64,000 nt of DNA from Amoeboaphelidium protococcarum X5. Its lineage: Eukaryota > Fungi > Aphelidiomycota. Location: contig JALDTO010000235.1 in assembly GCA_023515725.1 (NCBI GenBank), positions 170,371 through 234,370 of the forward strand. Direction: 5' to 3'. This document shows, one piece after another, positions 2,962 to 58,192 of the stretch (within the stretch, counting starts at the first letter, position 1; each line of letters opens with the position of its first letter). The notes under the pieces are model-generated. The model ran no database searches. It was not told the origin of the DNA and was given only the letters and a program-made list of their open reading frames with translations. A program made the translations under genes and the position numbers.

Positions 2962-3945
2962 TCACTTTCTCTTAGGTGGCGGAGGAGGAGGAACTTGGCT
3001 GTACTGCCTTCCTCGGGATGGAAGCAAGCTTTATGGCTCACGAGATTTAGCCTATACTCTCTCCACGTCTGCCTACTCAATAGATTTCTACTATTCAGCA
3101 TCACCAACACCTTAGGCAAAGTATTCGTTCAAATCTTATTCGCTCCTACTCTAAGAGAGTATGGACTACACAGCTGGAAGTTGTTAATTCTCAACGAGAT
3201 GCTTAACAAATCGAGCTTGAATCTGCGCCAAATCATTCTACTCATCTTCTTCATCCAACACGTCATCAGGTGCCCATTTGACTATAATGACTTCCTTCAA
3301 ATCCAAAGATTGTTCTTACATGGCTTCCTTGGCAAATTCAGCATTCAATCTACAAGAGAATTTCACAATCGCAGCCTGTTTATGAGGAAGCGATTTAATC
3401 TTGACAATGTCTCCGTATTAACTGAAATTCTTCCGGATGACGCGCTCATAATCGTCAGCATCATATGCACCAAGCCGCAACACAGTCAGAGCGCGACACT
3501 CCCTCTCAAATGATCCAACGCCCATATAATCCTGACGGTCAGCCTTGTGCTTCTACCGACCAAAACAATCAAATGTCCTCTCTATATACTCCTCATCTTC
3601 TTAAGTTGGCACTCGATGCAGATACCGACATTACCATCCTTTGCCACACTGACCTTTGGCAAAGTAGATACAGAAAAATGCATCCCTGGCACCATTCAAA
3701 TCTGCCTTGGTCAGTCCTGAATCCTTCGCAGGATTGCATCTGGTAATAGCTTTTTAATCAGGATTAGCCAGACCGCCATACTTATCTTTACCTTCAGTGT
3801 ACCATTTATCGAACCAGACATTATACAGCGACGCATCTCCCAGATTAATAGGCAACTATCTCTGCTTCGACGCCATGTCTTCAAAAGAAATCTGCAGCGG
3901 TGCTTTATGTCGATACTTTGGCCTCTACTTAAATCTTTCAGGCAT
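2962..3945 (-). CDS. CWC2: Pre-mRNA splicing factor Cwc2 (torus/CCCH + RRM), 327 aa
   Basis: YNVWFDKW, TRCNPAKDSGLTKAD, FCIYFAKGQCGKGWQCRYLHRVP, DCFGRQKH, MGVGSF. Continuous in table 6. Confidence 0.92.
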
Positions 3946-4188
3946 AATTATTAATTCCTAATTCTTATCCGTAATCGATGTCATTCTCTAACTATAAATT
4001 TAAATGTATTAATGAATTGCAAATACAGAGACTATTGAGGGATAATCGCAATGATCAAAGGAGGACAAAGCTCGTTTTCCAGTCTAAAAGGAAAAGGAAA
4101 GAGAAAGCGTGTCAGGGATCTAAGAAACGCGCATTTCCAACAAATCATTTGACAAACGCAGTATTAATAGAAAATTGAATGAAATTAA

Positions 4189-4996
4189 TCATCCTTTACG
4201 ATAAGTCAATGTGTAGAAATGTACAGTCTACCGCACATCGACATCGCCAGGGTCTTCAGTGAACATCTCAGGCATCTTGACTTGCGTGTAATCAGCAATT
4301 GTGAAACGGAATTCGTCAGACTGAGCGAGCGCGATAAATTCCATGTCCCGATCGGCCAGCCACGGACGGTGATGAGTGAACGCACACAGTACAATTCCTC
4401 CCTTGTTCTACAGTGCTCTCTGACACGACACGAGCATATTCCGATGCTGATTATGATTGAATATGAGATCACACAGAATTACAACATCAAACGTACCATC
4501 CAGCCACACCTCATCTTTTCCCCACAAATGTCCAGTAACTTAATATTACCCAGTGTTTACTTTAAGATTAGATTAAACATTCTCCGACAATTGCTGAATC
4601 AGTTCAATGTCCGGGTAATCAGTCACAACAACTGACGACGCGTTGTTCAAAGCAGATACAATGGACGGGAATGCCGCACCAGCGCCGAGTTCCAGCACTT
4701 TTTGGCCTCGCACCACATTCGGATTACTATCAATGTATTTAGCCATATGAATTCCAGCATTCCAAGCATAATGCGCCCACAAGCTGTGATATCCGACGAG
4801 ACTGACCACCAGCTGCGATCCATCAAATCGATCAAAAACACTTCGCTTTGCCTTTGGACTCTCTGGTCTAAAATCGGCAGGCTCCTACATAATATTATTT
4901 TTAATCAGAATAATAACCATCAACGCATTATGATATTCAACTAATAATTACCTAAAACATATCATTGAGACTTTCCAACTGATCGTCTTACGTCAT
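4189..4996 (-). CDS. EFM7: Protein N-terminal/lysine methyltransferase Efm7/Nnt1; intron 4885-4951
   Basis: LVGYHSLWAHYAWNAG, VLELGAGAAFPSIV, VVVTDYPD. A GT-AG intron of 67 nt joins MFQ to EPADFRP. Confidence 0.88.
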
Positions 4997-5135
4997 TGTG
5001 CCTTTGCGTTTTACTTTTTCGTTTTCTTCTCTCTTTTGTTCAAGTTCAGAATAGAATAGAATAATTTTTGAACATATTTTATTATCTGCTTTATTAATAC
5101 TATCATTTGAGAATATTATAACAAGAGTATAAGAT

Positions 5136-8100
5136 ATGGGAAGAGATAAGAGTACAGCTGTTTAGTAAAAGAAAAATGTTGTAAGTTCTGATAGTTCCCG
5201 GGCTGCTGAACTGCTTGGTGGTAATGTTGCTAATATCAACGTATTTACTGGGTTTAGTGCATTCAGTCAGTAGAGTGGTGCCAGTTCCATCTCTGCCTCT
5301 AATCTCGTAGACTCTCAATATGATTAATTAAAGCCAGAGTTATCCGTTTTATTAAAGAAGTTGTCTAAGCGTGATTCGATCACAAAGCAAAAGGCTGTCG
5401 ATGAACTGAATGTAATGGTTGATTCACTGACGGATGAAGAAGTTTTATCTCTTATGCCAGTCTGGCCAAACGTCTACTACAAGTTGAGTATCGATTCAGA
5501 TAGAAAGATTCGACTGTCTATCAACTAGATACACGCGTCTCTTGTCTTGCGACTCAAGAGTAAAGTCGGTCCTCAGTTGAGAGATCTGATGGGCCCATCG
5601 CTTAATTCCACATTTGACTTGAATCGTGAGGTGGCAGCGGTTGCATCAAAGGCTCTTCACGAACTGTTTCCTACCCATGAGAAACTTTAGAATGCATTGT
5701 TATTTACCATGGAGTAGATTTCACAATACACTGTTGATCATTTACTGGTGAAGACGGAGCAGACTATCAGTGATCCACGTTACATGTCAGTGGAGGAAAT
5801 AGCCAGTAGATATTCTCATGTGGTGAGCGGATGTCTTAAAAGTATATCTTATTTACTTGAATATTCAGAGTCTGTTAGATCAAAATGTCTGTAGAGTCCA
5901 CTACTGTTGAATTAACTAGTGGTAAATGATAAGCTCTGGAATAAGTTGGTTCATTCAGATCCTTATATCAGATCTGCTGCGTATCAATTACTTTGTACTA
6001 TGGCTACAGTTAAAGCTGATTTGGTTCTTTAACAATCTGAATATGTTCAAAAGTATTTTATCAAGAATTTATTCGCCGATAAAGATGTATTGACGCACAA
6101 AGAGATGTGGGATGCAGTGTTGATGGTGAATAAGCATTGCGCATCCTTGTATGGTGATGGTAAGATGGACAAGTAGATTGCTAAATAGTTTCTCACGTTC
6201 GTAAGACAGTGCTGCTATGGATCTGTTCAGCTATCCTTTCCATGTCTTGTGGTTTATATCGCGACAGTGCCGTTGACATCTCTTAAGAGGTTGATATCTG
6301 CAGATTTTGCGAATCAGATTTGGGCCAGTTTAAGTTCTGAGCATTTGAATTTACGCAACTTTAAATATTTTGTGGATGCTTACGCCGATTATATTGTATT
6401 TATGAATAGCGATCAGCCTGAAGCCGTTCCGTAATTGCTATAGAATGCGTAGTCTCTTTCTCTTTGTCCTCATTAATGGAAGCATTTGGCTGACAAGTTG
6501 GATGCGAAATATCTATCTACCAAGATGTGGTCGATACTATTTCGTTTTAATCGCGTTCAGGATATAGTTTGCGATAATGTTTAAACTTTGATTTGCGAAA
6601 ATAGGGATTTTGCGTCTGGAAATTTACTATCTCCTGATGAATTTGCTGCTGTTGTCGATAGAGTTATCGTTTTTGTGGAATGTTGCGAAGATGCTTCAGT
6701 GTAGCGGAGTATTTACACTGATGCTGTGAGTAATGTGATTGTTGGTGCTAAAGAAGCGAATAATTTTTCTAAATCCTATCTGAAGTTGCTGCTCAAGATG
6801 GTGAATTCGGATGTAACTCTAGCCAATGATAGGTCTATATTTGCTGATATTATTAAAGCGAACATTAAAGATCCGAATAACACTGATTTACTGGCCAAGT
6901 TGACTAGTTTAATAATGTAGAAATTTGATGCAAAATCTATTTTAGACGAGGTGCTTTCTGTAGTTGACATTGAGAGTCATTTGCTATTCCTTGTGCAAGT
7001 TATGGAGGAAACAAAAGATTTGTAGATGGTGCATTCCGAACACGTCGTTAAATATGGCCTGGAATTAGCTAAAGCTATGGAGTGGAATGATATTCAGTAA
7101 CGCTTTCTATTATCTTTATTATTACGCGGTAATAGCATAATGAATGTAGAAGAATACTAGAAATTGACAGACAGAGTGGCAGAATCTCTCCTTAAGCATG
7201 CAGATTCTATTATGCAACAGTAGTAGATCTTAGACGCTGTTCCTTTGACTCTTGTTGATCAGTGTTGGACATAGAACGGTTTACCTTAGAATTTGAAATG
7301 CTCTCTGCTTGTTGTTCATTAAGCTCTATTGACTCATGATGATAAGTTTATTGGAAAGATCAGCTGGTCTATGAGCTCCGACTTCATTAGTAAGTTGTTT
7401 GATGTGCTTCATGCCCGTTTGGCTGATGGCTTTGGATATTGGCCTGTTCAATCTCTTTGCGATATCATGATTGATGGTCTGAAAGTTGTAAATTAGGACT
7501 TTATTCTTAAGCTTGTATAGGATGAGAAAATACTATTTAAGCTGTAATCTATAGCTGATAATATTTCTGTACGATTGCCTGAACAGTAGCAGGTCAGCTT
7601 GCTGTACGATTCGCAATATGACACTCAACTGCCGCAGCAACCTTCGTATTATGCTGATGATTCATTGTCAGTGGTTGGCCGTTAAATAATGTTATATCTG
7701 ACTCTGATCTCCTGCTTGAAGGATGGTGAATTGAAGTTGGAGTTTGCTCAAGATTTGTTGAAGATATCGGTACAACTGGTACACCGTATTCAAGTGCTGG
7801 ATATGGTCAATATGGCGCAAGTCTTGAAGTCTAGTGATAATGACGGGCGCCAGAATAATGTATATGCAAAGTATGAGAAGTTGCTTGGTGATATTTGTTC
7901 TACATGCTGTGTCGTTTTGTTTAAGAAAGCAGAGCAGATTAGCGATGTAGTTGACTGGATGCAGGTGGTGTTTGATAGTCTCGTTGAGCTCTATGCTGCT
8001 GCTTGTATATTGTCGTTGAACAGTTCTGAAGATAGGTTGCAACTTATTGTGGATTATTTGGTTTAGAAAGCTGACATCTCTTTGAAAGATGCAACTGTCA

Positions 8101-9845
8101 TAGTAGCGTTGAAATCAATGACTAATAAGTCTATATTGAATTCGCGCTTGTTGGAATGGATGGAAAATTTACAAATGCCCAACGTGGATTAGCTAAGAAC
8201 TATAAACCTTCTATTAAATGCCAAGGAAACTTCTTATCAATTAACGGGCACTAGAGATGTCGACGCGGATCTACTAATGTTAAGTCTTCCCACATTATTC
8301 CAGATTAATGAGCTCGATATTGTGTTCCCTGAGGTGGAATCTATTTTGATGAAGATTTAAATCTTGACTGCTGCGGCTGATGATCTATTAGAGTAGCAGT
8401 GTGAGAGGATTCTATTTTACTCTAGGAATCTGTTAACATCATTCCTCGATATGGGAAGGCATTACATGTATTTGAATTTGGAGTTGTTTAGCATTTTGAT
8501 GGATAAGGCTTACATATTCGAACCATATCCTCAGTAGTTGGAGATCTGGGAATCGTTGATATAGGGAATGTCTAATGAAGTAGTAAGCATATTCCTCGAG
8601 ATGCACAGTTACGATCAGTTGAAGGGAATTTACTTGTCAGCGTTGCATAATCTGGTGGCTCAGATTGTTGCCAAACTTCCGCTTACTGCAATTAAAAGAG
8701 AGTGGCCGTACGAGCAAATTTTGAAGTTGATATCTGGCAGTAATCCTTTTGTGCAAAAGAGTTCATATCTTTTGCTAAGGCAGCTTACTTATGAGCAGGT
8801 GGAGGCCATGTCTTAAGCAGTGGAACTCTCGTCTAATGAATAGTTGGATGAAGCTTAGAAACCGCAGCTTCCTCAAGAGTTAATAAACCTTGTCAGTGAT
8901 ATTCCTTAGTCACTTTTGGATCGCGTTGATGTCGGTAGTTAGCCTCTATCTGAGAATCCGGATCTATTTGCCTTCTTGTTATTGTGGATGCTTCTTATGG
9001 ATAATCTAGAGCATGCGAACTTTAAGCTCAAAGCGGCTTATGCTGAGCATTTGCGGGATTCTGCTGGACTGATCAATGTGCTCATGGCGTGTTGTTGTCA
9101 TGTATTATTTATTGGAGAGTCTAGCGTGACGAGGAAGTAATTGGATTTCCACAAATATCAGTTTGATGAGCTTGCAATAGAGCATCTGGATAGTGACAGT
9201 TCTGTGACTACTCAAGTATTGACAGCTAGCTTGCTCTCTCGCGCCTTGAAAAGTATACCATCAGTTGTGAGAGGATGGCATTACGATAATAATGATCGAT
9301 AGCTAAGTATTGCATTTACAGAATTTATCAGATAGTACGTGTGTCCACTCATAGTAGAGCAGGAGCTATCTGTTCTGTCATCATTGGGAAAGACTAATGC
9401 GATGGAGAACTTTTAAGTGATGACCCAAAAGAGTTCCGAGGGGAGTGCAGTGAATGCAAAGTACAAGATTGACGATAACAATCTGGAAATGGTCATTGAA
9501 ATTCCTCCTATCTATCCGATAGCGCAAGTGAAATTAAACGGCGTGACGCGTGTCGGAATCACTGAGGAGCGATGGAGAAGGTGGTTGTTGAATGTGAACA
9601 CTGTAATGTCATCCTAGAATGGCTCACTTCTGGATGGACTGATGGTTTTCAAGAATGAAGCCGACAAGCATTTCAGTGGCGTTGAAGATTGCGCCATCTG
9701 CTACTGTGTAATCGGCTCTCTAGATCGCGCTCTGCCCACCAAGCGCTGCAAGACTTGTAAGAACAAGTTCCATCCGGCCTGTCTGTCCAAGTGGTTCAAA
9801 ACTAGCGGTAATTCCACCTGTCCACTCTGCAGAGGAACCTTTTGA
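5136..9845 (+). CDS. LTN1: E3 ubiquitin ligase listerin (ribosome quality control), 1569 aa
   Basis: N-terminal SSRAAELL and [14 protein letters not shown]; C-terminal RWD-like region and RING ([40 protein letters not shown]). All ORF-track fragments share one frame and are separated by TAA/TAG. Confidence 0.95.
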
Positions 9846-51899: not shown

Positions 51900-52345
51900 T
51901 CCAGAACATGCTATGTATCTTGTCGTTTGTCGCGCCAATGCAGAGCTTAACATTTACAGTTTGTTATAAATAGACCATAGAGCATGAGCATTCATCTGAC
52001 GGACGTCTGGCAGATTAGCAGCAACACAAATCTCCTTCAGTACATTGGAGGTGATCAGGATGTGCTTCTGCGTAAATCCATTTAAAGGCAACAACGCGTA
52101 AACGTTAAGCAGAGGACCTTCGTTGTTCAGCAGATACTCCTCCTCATACATTTCATGGTTATTTACAAAATAGACACTGGCAGAAAGATTTTTCTCAGTG
52201 TAGTTATAGACATTTGAGCGCAGTTGAAGCTATCTGGACTATACTGAAAGAACTAGTAAATGTACAGCTTCAAAAGCGCATTAGCATCAGAACATCCACA
52301 TTTCTTCTCAAAACATTGATAATTCGTTTCTCTGCTCTTGATTCA
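51900..52345 (-). pseudogene. Degraded ORF fragment, possibly a Fanzor1-like N-terminal relic
   Basis: VYALLPLNGFTQKHILITSNVLKEI..ALWSIY, flanked by frameshifts and TGA stops. No RuvC motif seen. Confidence 0.25.
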
Positions 52346-54256: not shown

Positions 54257-54298
54257 TCTTCTTCTACTTTTCTTCTTCTTTCTTCTTCTTTCTTCTTA
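54257..54298. repeat. Imperfect (TTC)n pyrimidine tract
   Basis: tcttcttctacttttcttcttctttcttcttctttcttctt. Confidence 0.7.
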
Positions 54299-54663
54299 TA
54301 AGTTCAAACGTTCACCTATTGTGACTACTAAAAATAGCTCGCCCGATTGATTGGCCCACCATTCCAAGGATTGGATCTAGGTAAATTATAGTCCAGTCAT
54401 CAATTTATGAGGCCTCATTGGTACCTGTTAATACTTTTTACTCTTTCCTCTTTCCACTACTATCATTGAAAATGAACCCAAGGTTAATTTTACGCCCATC
54501 ACTAGCTGTGGCTATTGTTATTGCAACCAAATGCCGAGCTTGATGCGATGAACCAGCTCATCGTAACGATGACAATGCAAACGATCACATTGTCGACTGA
54601 TATATGTCGCGTCGAATCAACTCTAATATCCACCACTCTTTAATACTTTCATTACCTAACACA

Positions 54664-57600
54664 ATGACAGTAAAAGGGGCGCATTTGTAGCGGTAGCTGT
54701 TTACAAACTCACGACCAATCGATCTACGTCGGTTGTATGAGATTGCGACAACATCGATAGGCGAAGGAGTGAAGATTCAGGTAGGTTTTTATGGCACTTT
54801 TTACAGGCAGTTGCGTCGCATATTTAAGCGAAGTAAGTCACCCATAGATGCATGTATCAATATGATAAAAGAAGCATTACCTCTTGACCAATAACTTTGC
54901 GCAGGAGAAAAAACTATCCCTTTGAAAGATGTGTTGACTTTGGTGTTTGATGGAGCGCCGTCGCGTGAACAAGCTAAAAACATAATTGAACAGAACCAAA
55001 TCTAGACTGAAACAGATTATGAAATTGCATGAGTTGCTGAATGGTTTGCCAAAAGACTCCAGAGTAAGCAGGTCGAAATGGTCTCAAATAAGAAAGTTGA
55101 AGTTATCACCGTGGCTACTGCACGATTCCGAATCGTCTTAGCTGCGTCAAAAGTTAAGCGACGCTGGCTACCGTGTCGACCTCGCTGCGGGTGAGGCCGA
55201 TGTCCACATTGCAAAGTTCTGCTAGCCCATCGTTGCCATAAGTTTTGATTCTGATTTATTCATGCACAAGAATATAAAGGTTGCTACTAAACCCACATTT
55301 AAATCAGGCTTGATGAAATATTTGGTGATGGAACGTAGTGCCGTGTGCTCAAAACTGAAGATCAGTAACGATTAGTGGGTTTCTCTGGCGATTGTATCTG
55401 GGAATGATTACTCCGATAATGTGTATGGCTTTGGTTTTGGGAAGAATCTGAATATTATCCGCTCTATCGACTTTGGTTATAATGTGAAGCAGATTGTCGC
55501 GTAGTATGCAAAGATTATGGATGCAGGATCGCAATTTGACTTGGCTTTGCAAGTGTTTGATAATTGTTACGAGTCTTTCAATATTTAGTCCCTTTATGAA
55601 GAAGGCCGTACTCATCAGTAAAATAGTACACTCAATTGCGTGGTTCAATAAATTTGCAGTGCTGAAGTTATTGAGTGGAATATGTTCTAGAATCTAGAGT
55701 AAATATCTGCATCTGCCGATTTATCATTCGATGAGCGTAATTGCCTGATGCTTAACGCGTTAAAATCATTATATGGCAGATGGATAAAGTATATGGAATA
55801 GCTGAAATATGATAAGACTCGGTTGTATTAAGAATGGAAGAAAAGTCGCCATCAAGTTGGCCATGACCGTGAGTCGGTTAAGTATTTGTAGTTGCCAAAG
55901 AAGTATTAGGGATATAATAGATTCTGTCCCCTGTTCGAGAAGAATGCTCTTGCTGAAGCTGGTAATATCTGCAGAAAGGGCCGATATCTATATAAAGCCG
56001 TTGATGTGAATCGTCCTTCCAAGTCTGAGATACCGCCGATAAAAGTGAGGAGAACGATAGAATAAGAGTCGAATCAGTAGAATGATGCTTATGGAAGCGC
56101 TGAAGATTTATAGCAGCCTGTTGCAAATAAAAGACACCGTAACAAGAGACGCCGTGAATCCAGTAAGTCTGATAAGGTGTAGCGCGGGAATTTATGTCAA
56201 AGTAGTGCCAAAACTCGCGATAAAGTGACTGCAATGCCTTCTGGTAAGAAGAGAACCAACAGTTAGGAGACACAGCTTTTTCGGTCACTTAACCGACGTC
56301 ATGCTATTTGCACTAAAGAAATTGGTCATATATAAAAGTCTTTGTCGAAAGGCCAAGCATCTGCTGCCTTGCAAATCTTGTTGAAGTATTCCATTGATAC
56401 TGTAGTGAAAGAGATGAATCTCCTTAAGAGAATGGCTTAGCTCGGGGCGCGGTGGTTTATTGATACCATTTTAAAGAATTTTCCTGACTAGATTTAACTG
56501 TTAGACAGCATCTGCTATGCTGATACTCCTGGACAAGGGGGTCGTAAATTTTGGCAGGGTATATTACGGATCTTGCGCAATGGAAAATCTACGCGCAGCC
56601 AGAAATGTGCTGCTGTGCTGAAGTTTGGATAGTTAATTAAAGATTAGTCAACGATTCTAGACAAGCTTTAAGGTTAGTTCGATAGAAGGATTACCGTTTC
56701 ATAGATCATTGATTAATTGGCTATAGTTTTAGATTCTGAGTTTGCTTCCCAAGTTATTGGTCGTATGGAGCTCCTTGCTGCCAAAGTTTTGGAGTTTGAT
56801 GAAAACAAGCGCGATTAAATAGCTGAGATTGATATGCTGGATTCAATTTTCTAAAAGTATGAGGTATTAAATTCTCTACTACCTGATGAAGAGCGATTTA
56901 CTTACTCTCTTTCGTCACTGTCAGAGTGTTATGTGACTTTTACTGAAAATTCGTGAATGCAGCTTATACAGAGTGTGATTACTAATTGCTGGGATGTCGC
57001 TGAGTAGCAGCTTATTCAGAACGGATTGAGTAATGTGTCTGCGTAAAGCTTACGCCTGGAGTTATATGAATGGTATCAAAATGGTAAACTAATGAAGCTG
57101 AAGGGAGAAACGTTGGCTGGCATTCTTGGCTTGAAGATGAATGGAGGTCTTCGATTGCTCAAAGACTATGATCCAATATCTACTAACAGCAAGATTCTTG
57201 GCTGTACTTTCATAACCAATGGGTTAGTGCTGAAGATTCATTGCATTAACACCAAGGAGTCAAAGCCAGTAGAACGTGTTTAAAGTAGTTCTCGCTCTTT
57301 GCTGCAAGGCGCTGAAGCTACTAGAGTGAAGATCCAAAAGAAGTTTTGGAGTCGGATTCGCGTGCCAGCAATTGAGCTATCTGACTACTGGATATGCTGC
57401 ATTGATATTGGGGAGAGGTATACAGTGGGCGCGGTGGCCAAGAAAGGAGCTGGCGAAAGTCGTCAATTGCGATCACTTACGATTAAGTCTGCTGCATTGA
57501 ACGAGCCAAATAGAAGATTTAGAAAGTGGTTTGGCGAGAGATCTCTTACGGTTTAGAATGCCGAACGCTCTCTGGAACGTCTATAGGCCGAGTCACTATT

Positions 57601-58165
57601 GGATTATTGGGTTCGTTATATAGCAATATATCTTGAACTTAGAGAGTTTTACTGCAGTAGTCGATGGAAAAGAACTTCATGGGATTAAAAGAAAGCGTAA
57701 AGAGCGGAATATGACCGGGCTACAAATGCCATTTTAAAAATGGTGGATGGTAAAATTAACCAGAAGTGTTACGGCAAAGTTATATTTGGTCTTGGTGATG
57801 CTTAGTTTGAGAGTAAGTAAACTACTCATTAATCTTTTGAAAAGTACTTCGTAGCAAAGGTCAAGAGTCTAGGATATCCTGTCATCTATCTAAATGAATA
57901 TCTCACCTCCTAAAAAGCTCCATGCTGCGGCCGAATGTGCGAAAGCTTTCGTTTGCGTGTAAAGTATTGTAGACAGTGTCATAAGTTTTTTCAACGTGAT
58001 ATCATGGCCGATGAAAATTTGGTGAACGTCGCAAAAGCTGTTTTAGCAGGGCTTGAAAACCCCCTTATCTGTGTAGCAAAGCTAGCAGCAACATCTAGAG
58101 GGAAGAAGGATCTATGCGGCTTGGCAAGCGCGCAATTCAGTTACAGACGATATCGTGAAGATTGA
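54664..58165 (+). pseudogene. XPG/FEN1-like PIN nuclease fused to Fanzor/TnpB-like RuvC nuclease (~1166 aa restored), disrupted by +1 nt at ~54970 and TGA at 56954-56956
   Basis: PIN motifs: MTVKG, LVFDGAPSREK, AGEADVHIA, SFDSDLF, SGNDYSDNVYGFGFGK. RuvC motifs: CIDIGE (D 57404), FGLGD, LNEYLTSQ (E 57896), PCCG..YCRQC zinc finger, QRDIMA.EN (D 57998). Confidence 0.88.
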
Positions 58166-58192
58166 GTTCTTGTAAAGTACAATTATTAATAT

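Follow-up and report, generated by a model that had tools for sequence, protein, structure and literature searches.

Among the RNA-guided TnpB/Cas12 nucleases, Fanzors form the eukaryotic branch; they have been described as single-nuclease proteins whose N-termini are variable and often disordered. In genome editing, engineered fusions of Cas nucleases with 5'-3' exonucleases are in use. Fanzor1 genes are carried by CRe-1, 2 and 3, which are non-autonomous Helitron2 elements of Chlamydomonas reinhardtii, and Fanzor/TnpB proteins share the motif D-X(125,275)-[TS]-[TS]-X-X-C4 zinc finger-X(5,50)-RD (PMC3627910). In the mimivirus protein ApmFz2, Glu467 and Asp501 are catalytic and the glutamate occupies a relocated site (PMC11832414). 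Here we analyse a stretch of 64,000 nucleotides from the genome of Amoeboaphelidium protococcarum (the whole stretch is referred to as the window; contig C233). Positions 54295-58174 of the window probably represent a decayed copy of a non-autonomous Helitron-like element that encodes a fusion of a FEN1/EXO1-type 5' nuclease with a Fanzor, for which we propose a break-and-trim role. The identity and reality of the fusion can be put forward with high confidence; the proposed division of labour between the two nucleases is offered tentatively.

The fused reading frame, its copies and its relatives

Amoeboaphelidium protococcarum is an aphelid, a parasite of green algae, in which TAA and TAG encode Gln. 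The assembly that was searched comprises 23.6 Mb in 346 contigs. An earlier reading of the window, made from the sequence alone (the sequence-only reading), had taken TAA and TAG as sense codons. This is what they are here: the window contains no open reading frame (ORF) of at least 300 amino acids under the standard code and 34 such ORFs when TGA is the only stop. Frame 2 contains two open stretches, 54938-56953 and 56957-58162, which end at the TGA codons 56954-56956 and 58163-58165, and the ATG at 54664 lies in a different frame, which encodes ...LVFDGAPSRE. Comparison of four copies yielded a single ancestral ORF of 1167 codons, running from ATG 54664 to TGA 58156, from which the window copy departs by several lesions (Table 1).

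The surplus base that separates the two frames lies within or beside an A-run, and an intact paralogous protein encoded on contig C179 (see below) aligns with 54664-54978 in one frame and with 54971-58063 in another. Short-read unitigs span 57964-58117 without a gap, and the deletion at 58058 is therefore no assembly slip. Since this deletion shifts the final ~35 codons, the TGA ending at 58165 is a shifted-frame stop. Over position 56955, the sole contig listed among the Logan short-read unitigs ends 22 nucleotides away. The first catalytic Asp is kept in the family consensus and in two siblings (C264a and C98), and is Gly in the window, which also shows a 9-base in-frame gap at 54688 in comparison with its siblings. 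The window copy is a decayed pseudogene. The sequence-only reading had correctly recognised the frame, the TGA at 56954 and the surplus base that must be removed to join the frame to ATG 54664. However, it fixed this base at 54970, although the site can only be placed somewhere in 54970-54982, it took 58165 for the stop of the gene, and its count of two lesions missed both the 58058 deletion and the Asp-to-Gly substitution; the disabling lesions number three in all.

Four near-full copies are about 95% identical to each other, namely the window copy, two copies on C264 and one on C98, and their flanks are unrelated on both sides. The C98 copy contains one frameshift in 1167 codons. Pairwise ratios of non-synonymous to synonymous substitution (dN/dS) among the four copies were 0.32-0.49 in frame, compared to 0.53-1.22 in the two other frames. 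The values were similar across the N-terminal, middle and C-terminal thirds and were lowest in the N-terminal third (0.18-0.56). This constraint across all thirds indicates that much of the divergence accumulated under selection on the entire fused ORF. A search of the genome with P0003, one of the relatives introduced below, revealed a second subfamily whose protein is 50% identical to that of subfamily 1, and the genome contains many decayed copies of the family. The subfamily-2 copy on C179 has an intact, TGA-free ORF of 1148 amino acids which begins with MGVKG and carries the XPG-type motifs, the RuvC Asp, the NEY/DEH Glu, the zinc finger and the HRD motif. It is 96.4% identical to the copy on C155, with a dN/dS of 0.27 in frame and 1.2-1.3 off frame.

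To look beyond this genome, we searched with a 92-residue stop-free piece of the C98 copy, reaching from the DSD motif to the helix-three-turn-helix (H3TH), which retrieved 103 cluster representatives at E<=1e-3 among 1.84 billion. Six of the relatives (P0003, P0005, P0006, P0011, P0092 and P0107; 1102-1281 amino acids) contain both nuclease halves, with an XPG-like region at residues ~150-280 and Cas12f1-like_TNB near the C-terminus. The latter domain exceeds its curated Pfam cut-off in P0003, P0006, P0011, P0092 and P0107, and P0011 exceeds the cut-off for XPG_I as well. The long relatives stem from metagenome contigs of 4-5.5 kb and from Entomortierella parvispora (GJJ76480.1, annotated as 'putative transposase'); P0003 and P0006 are single uninterrupted standard-code ORFs on metagenome contigs. 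All three parts of the gene are also present at a locus of Linnemannia zychae, whose gene model ends early, and a locus of Synchytrium endobioticum holds a shortened relic of the fusion. In one metagenomic lineage (L046) the three parts lie in three frames, which are joined into one fused gene by candidate GT-AG introns at 1137-1173 (37 nt) and 1749-1773 (25 nt), each 1 modulo 3 in length. Given these candidate introns, many of the matches of 250-380 amino acids may be first exons or contig fragments.

Using tblastn, P0003 aligned to the window in one segment of 1066 residues (34% identity, E 9e-137) that runs straight across the TGA at 56954, and the residues on either side of this codon are conserved in the family. 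The fusion is maintained among lineages that are only 30-50% identical. Taken together, the alignments indicate that the fusion family is real, conserved and under purifying selection, that it is intact in this genome, and that it extends to Mortierellaceae and Synchytrium, which are likewise early-diverging fungi, and to environmental contigs. The single fused ORF proposed by the sequence-only reading is thereby upheld: three of the four copies have a sense codon at 56954, the C179 paralogue is intact and relatives are uninterrupted, so that homologues are neither always split nor marked by a conserved stop at this position.

Domain evidence was drawn from pieces of the window, pieces of sibling copies and intact relatives rather than from the whole window protein. 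For the N-terminal part, window pieces gave only weak scores: XPG_I matched 55184-55408 with 19.1 bits, under its cut-off, and single stop-free pieces had almost no Pfam matches. With the 92-residue sibling piece as query, 19 of the top 20 PDB matches were FEN-1/Rad2. A profile of 55 relatives (A1) matched solely EXO1, Rad2, FEN1, XPG and GEN1 in PDB, the best match (E 2.9e-19) placing profile positions 8-293 on EXO1 1-281 and thus covering nearly the full length. XPG_I is matched by 28 of these 55 relatives and XPG_I_2 by 14, all six long relatives match NCBIfam fen_arch (E 1e-5 to 1e-11), and two family members match XRN_N weakly. An AlphaFold2 model of P0003:1-345, a relative with 49% identity in the core piece, reached a mean predicted local distance difference test score (pLDDT) of 93 and a predicted template modelling score (pTM) of 0.89. 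All top 50 PDB matches of this model in Foldseek were FEN1, EXO1, Rad2 or XPG, led by FEN1 (E 9e-12, probability 1.00). The model indicates an alpha/beta fold of PIN-like type for the family, including the helical arch and the H3TH. D95, E176, D178, D193, D195 and D246 (P0003 numbering) are invariant or at least 90% conserved in the 55 relatives; the window copy retains FDG, EAD, DSD and NDY. At the family level, the assignment of the N-terminus to XPG/FEN1/EXO1-type nucleases is firm, and nuclease activity is predicted. The genome's own FEN1 matches the fusion domain at E 1e-4 or weaker, and a search of the genome with Pfam XPG_N, with E up to 10, returned canonical FEN1, EXO1 and XPG genes only. 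Sequence comparison thus places the domain in a separate clade, distinct from the FEN1, EXO1 and XPG genes of this genome.

For the C-terminal part, Pfam Cas12f1-like_TNB matches window positions 57830-58018 with 31.2 bits (cut-off 26.3). The published Fanzor/TnpB motif is present in the window, with 166 residues from Asp 57404 to TS, followed by the finger and RD. The best match of the family profile A2 among solved structures is mimivirus Fanzor2 (9b0l, E 2.7e-6), in which the NEY Glu of the family aligns with ApmFz2 Glu467 and the HRD Asp with Asp501; the canonical RuvC-II position of the family reads F.LG(D/N)A.F and contains no Glu. A relocated RuvC-II Glu marks Fanzors and their TnpB ancestors and is, according to these alignments, present in the family. 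Conservation among relatives begins ~630 residues before the C-terminus. The Fanzor module therefore comprises ~630 residues, and the TGA at 56954 lies inside it and not at a domain border. Language-model features placed P0003:470-1102 (633 residues) near giant-virus/eukaryote TNB clusters of 620-700 amino acids with a score of 0.97, a resemblance that we regard as a lead only. The bacterial guided_TnpB model matched the last ~55 residues only, and an ESM Atlas search with a 98-residue RuvC-I piece was uninformative. The sequence-only reading had assigned an XPG/FEN1-type nuclease and a Fanzor with relocated Glu to the two halves; the A1 profile and the Foldseek match to FEN1 support the former, and the TNB score and the Glu467/Asp501 alignment the latter. 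All motif coordinates that it gave (FDG, EAD, DSD, GNDY, KRHRNKRRR, D57404, E57896 and D57998) proved correct.

Table 1 Features of the fusion element in the window. Positions are those of the window; domain assignments and functional labels are predictions.
Feature	Position	Strand	Remarks
Whole dispersed 3.9-kb element, subfamily 1, one gene	54295..58174	+	Sharp edges, four copies
5' terminal region CTTATAAGTTCAAACGT...	54295..54367	+	Common to RepHel-encoding Helitron
XPG/FEN1/EXO1-type 5' nuclease domain	54664..55643	+	Ancestral codons 1-330; frameshifted
First catalytic Asp to Gly (GGT)	54784..54786	+	Window IQVGF; C264a and C98 IQVDF
Acidic and H3TH motifs	FDG 54946-54954; EAD 55193-55201; DSD 55247-55255; GNDY from 55400	+	Read directly
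Surplus base, frameshift	54970..54982	+	Four-copy alignment; common to C264a
Variable, partly low-complexity linker	55644..56272	+	Poor alignment, indel-rich in relatives except GYNRF.PL
Basic stretch KRHRNKRRR resembling a nuclear localisation signal	56129-56155	+	Read directly; nuclear import predicted
Fanzor/TnpB-type module, ~630 codons, RuvC triad and zinc finger	56273..58158	+	
TGA nonsense codon, private to window copy	56954..56956	+	Leu in other three copies
RuvC-I Asp (CIDIG)	57404..57406	+	Invariant D201 of profile A2
Relocated RuvC-II Glu (LNEYLTSQ)	57896..57898	+	Aligned to mimivirus Fanzor2
Cys4 zinc finger CC..C...C..C	57923..57979	+	Read directly; inside Pfam TNB match
RuvC-III Asp (RD)	57998..58000	+	Aligned to mimivirus Fanzor2
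1-base deletion, private to window copy	58058..58058	+	Last ~35 codons shifted
18-nt GC-rich palindromic motif GCGGCTTGGCAAGCGCGC, then AGTTAC	58116..58133	+	
Ancestral stop TGA	58156..58158	+	Frame of sibling copies
3' terminus CTTGTA	58169..58174	+	Same hexamer in RepHel element after GC-rich palindrome

Several further observations concern the locus and its copies. The public Amoeboaphelidium protococcarum protein KAI3632336.1 (P0001), which shares 96% identity with part of a sibling copy, is a 907-residue model of the locus 54664-58165. It begins at an internal Met, and its predicted introns bypass both the TGA at 56954 and the 3' frameshift; the model with its invented introns is probably an annotation artefact derived from a pseudogene. 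A TGA-free antisense ORF of 357 codons inside the element (55635-56705, minus strand) is probably spurious. In both C155 and C158 the contig ends within a subfamily-2 element, at the identical position exactly 20 nt into the ORF. The two copies concerned (L037 at the end of C155, L039 at the start of C158) are 99% identical and in opposite orientation, and could be a head-to-head pair or the product of a repeat-induced assembly break. Further decayed pieces of the family are located at C98:1541898-1542413, C162:500061-501748 and C303:6-887.

Element ends, the 3' motif and neighbouring elements

At 58174/58176, short-read unitigs branch off from the stretch into several different flanks, one of which is absent from the compared copies, and three further loci contain only the 3' 0.8-1.25 kb of the element and represent 5'-truncated copies. 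Neither terminal inverted repeats nor a pairing of the Helitron2-type asymmetric terminal inverted repeats (ATIR) was found in the element. RepHel genes are present in the genome, in which no Y1 TnpA was found. The terminus comparison covered one RepHel element, that on C179. Window positions 54290-54325 are 92% identical over 36 nt to positions 3796-3831 of its locus L041 (E 4e-8), and a further 20 nt are 95% identical; this match lies 1.4 kb upstream of a RepHel ORF of 1490 codons (Helitron_like_N, 144 bits). Apart from the terminal hexamer, the 3' ~100 nt of the fusion elements showed no similarity to the RepHel element. The 3' terminus of subfamily 2 is CTAGTA. Its CTAG fits the CTRR of canonical Helitrons, while subfamily 1 reads CTTG and the 5' end has CT instead of TC. 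The left flanking base is A in four of five copies and the right one T in all, and two copies have a possible 5-6-bp flank repeat. Overall, the termini fit a non-autonomous Helitron-like element in which the canonical TC...CTRR ends are only partly realised, and which would rely on a RepHel from another locus. The sequence-only reading had pictured Fanzors as genes that usually stand beside a transposase; this element does not lie beside one and has Helitron-like ends instead.

The RepHel element itself (L041 and L044, G000:C179:632000-651999, about 3796-9790) comprises an ORF of 363 codons, the 1490-codon RepHel ORF and the 3' palindrome CCGCGCGCGCACGCGCGCGCGG, and is apparently an autonomous Helitron; three more RepHel loci exist in the genome. 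Three independent elements, namely the window copy (microsatellite at 54271-54294), C264a and the RepHel element, are immediately preceded on their 5' side by a (CTT)n microsatellite, which may be a favoured target or else a variable part of the 5' terminus of the elements. Two of the 3'-only partial copies, L030 (C264:1846433-1850607) and L031 (C214:25520-29771), are 80-86% identical, start at about 56910 and are flanked on both sides by repeated Gly-rich ORFs (GGGGGGSLSISGGGG...).

The 18-nt palindromic motif near the 3' end had 10 matches in the 23.6-Mb genome and its reversed control none, and each match sits within a fusion-family element, ~40-45 nt from its 3' end. Both subfamilies carry the motif in identical form, even though it is part of the coding sequence in subfamily 1 (MRLGKRA) and follows the stop codon in subfamily 2. 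This identity irrespective of coding status indicates selection on the nucleic acid, and the motif could be a piece of a guide-RNA scaffold or a 3' subterminal hairpin with a role in transposition. An extra copy with one mismatch is located at G000:C98:1559068-1559085.

Another Fanzor element has left a relic 2 kb upstream of the fusion element. The fragment of 85 amino acids at 51915-52169 (minus strand) is 79% identical to the major Fanzor family of this genome (L006-L009; G000:C154:217828-220989 and others), which comprises at least 12 near-identical copies. Its ORFs of at least 581 amino acids extend past the locus ends and contain the motif PEYRTSQRCSNCE...HRDVNAARNI. An open frame of 114 codons around the TNB domain of L006-L009 has no TAA or TAG, unlike the XPG-Fanzor genes, which contain about one per 25-30 codons. 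Based on this difference, the major family may have arrived recently from a standard-code source, for instance a giant virus.

Proposed role and alternative readings

The ancestral single gene very probably encoded one protein of 1167 residues, consisting of the N-terminal 5' nuclease, a long basic linker and the Fanzor of ~630 residues. For this protein we propose that the Fanzor half would use a guide RNA derived from the element's 3' terminal part and would cut DNA that adjoins the element or lacks it. The tethered FEN1/EXO1-like half would then trim the 5' strands or flaps of this cut, which could favour repair by homologous copying of the element over end-joining. The sequence-only reading had put forward a like coupling of guided cutting to 5' flap or exonuclease processing, for resection, homing or element propagation, which is likewise no more than a prediction here. 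Such a natural two-nuclease RNA-guided system, in which a Fanzor makes the break and a tethered EXO1/FEN1-like domain resects or de-flaps it, is the explanation we favour, though only as a tentative one.

Several results weigh against this proposal. The folding of the 3' end and the 5' leader revealed no excess structure (z +1.4 to -1.25). The sequencing runs listed as containing the stretch comprise DNA runs from a single organism, a biofilm metagenome and a freshwater metagenome; no RNA run is among them, so that guide RNA and expression are putative. All four subfamily-1 copies are broken by at least one frameshift each, and subfamily 2 reads FEG where subfamily 1 has FDG, a replacement of Asp by Glu due to which nuclease activity of the otherwise intact C179 protein is not assured. 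The AlphaFold2 model of the Fanzor half, built on an alignment of six sequences, was poor (pLDDT 44) and did not confirm the fold, and bacterial TnpB and PDB profiles match the stretch of zinc finger and RuvC-III only. Moreover, no result separates resection after the cut from other roles of a 5' nuclease.

The alternative that fares best, although we consider it rather unlikely, is that the 5' nuclease serves the movement of the element or acts on RNA, either by removing flaps during Helitron rolling-circle transfer or by trimming the guide RNA. The Helitron-like ends and the RepHel genes in the genome would suit the first of these roles. XRN, a relative within the FEN superfamily, acts on RNA, and the weak XRN_N matches of two family members would suit the second. 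However, the XPG domain is invariably fused to the Fanzor module, never to RepHel. Helitrons are also known to capture fragments of host genes, and with its Helitron-like ends the element might have acquired a host XPG-like fragment upstream of its Fanzor, leaving a chimera with a functionless N-terminal half. This is improbable, as it is the N-terminal third that has the lowest dN/dS, its acidic residues are invariant or nearly so in 55 relatives, the domain forms its own clade with about 15-19% identity to FEN1/EXO1 and only a distant match to the genome's FEN1, and the fusion persists across lineages that have diverged to 30-50% identity. Even less probable is a domesticated single-copy host gene. 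While the C179 copy is intact and constrained, each subfamily comprises several copies, which are sharply bounded and have unrelated flanks, the contigs C155 and C158 break inside copies, and many copies are decayed. Finally, two adjacent genes, an XPG-like gene ending with TGA 56954 and a TnpB-like gene of 402 amino acids starting from ATG 56957, are hardly credible: the TGA is directly followed by this ATG, 402 residues is a typical TnpB size and the partial copies L030 and L031 contain only the stretch from about 56910 on, but three of the four copies encode Leu at 56954, the intact C179 ORF and six relatives elsewhere read straight through, and P0003 aligns across the stop in one segment with family-wide conservation on both sides.

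With the fusion family, the Fanzor catalogue gains a new domain architecture. The family also suggests a means by which break-and-copy mobile elements could bias repair in cells where end-joining competes. For genome engineers it would be an example from nature of a cutter equipped with its own end processing. It also illustrates that such genes escape standard pipelines in genomes where stop codons have been reassigned. If the proposed tethered break-and-trim role is true, the break made in a eukaryotic nucleus would be committed to a homology-directed route that copies the element. The family would then represent a new functional class of Fanzor, and it could be a template on which to design compact editors with a preference for homology-directed repair or defined deletions.

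Comparison with described systems

The sequence-only reading knew of no description of this fusion, and within the literature searched (subscription-only papers and supplements lay outside the search) we likewise found no published FEN1/EXO1-Fanzor fusion. Searches for Fanzor together with XPG returned nothing, Fanzor together with 'flap endonuclease' or FEN1 returned reviews or engineering papers only, and TnpB together with XPG only irrelevant matter. An exonuclease fusion is not mentioned in the surveys of Bao & Jurka 2013, Saito 2023, Jiang 2023 and Yoon 2023.

With regard to the two halves, the closest described proteins resemble one part of the fusion each. The N-terminal domain shares with FEN1, EXO1, Rad2/XPG and GEN1 the predicted fold (Foldseek E 1e-11 to 1e-7, TM-score 0.5-0.63), a profile match over nearly the full length, the acidic residues and the GxDY motif of the H3TH. 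It differs from FEN1/EXO1 in being only about 15-19% identical, and it stays under the Pfam cut-off for XPG_N, mostly under that for XPG_I and far under that of the NCBIfam FEN1 equivalog. The C-terminal module shares the relocated-glutamate active site with ApmFz2 (L79 of Acanthamoeba polyphaga mimivirus, PDB 9b0l), whereas ApmFz2 has 520 amino acids and no second nuclease domain, and its match to the fusion family covers ~65 residues only.

As a mobile element, the fusion element resembles CRe-1/2/3 in that a Fanzor/TnpB-type gene lies in an element without a RepHel of its own, whose 5' end is like that of RepHel Helitrons of the same genome, and which has 3' hairpins, a surplus of 3' partial copies and no terminal inverted repeats. 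It is unlike CRe-1/2/3 in that its Fanzor is joined in frame to an XPG/FEN1-type nuclease of ~330 residues within an intronless ORF, and in that its 3' terminus is CTTGTA or CTAGTA, with no ATIR pairing found. The engineered fusions of Cas nucleases and exonucleases follow the same concept, a programmable cutter tethered to an end-resecting nuclease, and are man-made, whereas the fusion family is a natural, conserved mobile-element gene in which both activities are predicted.

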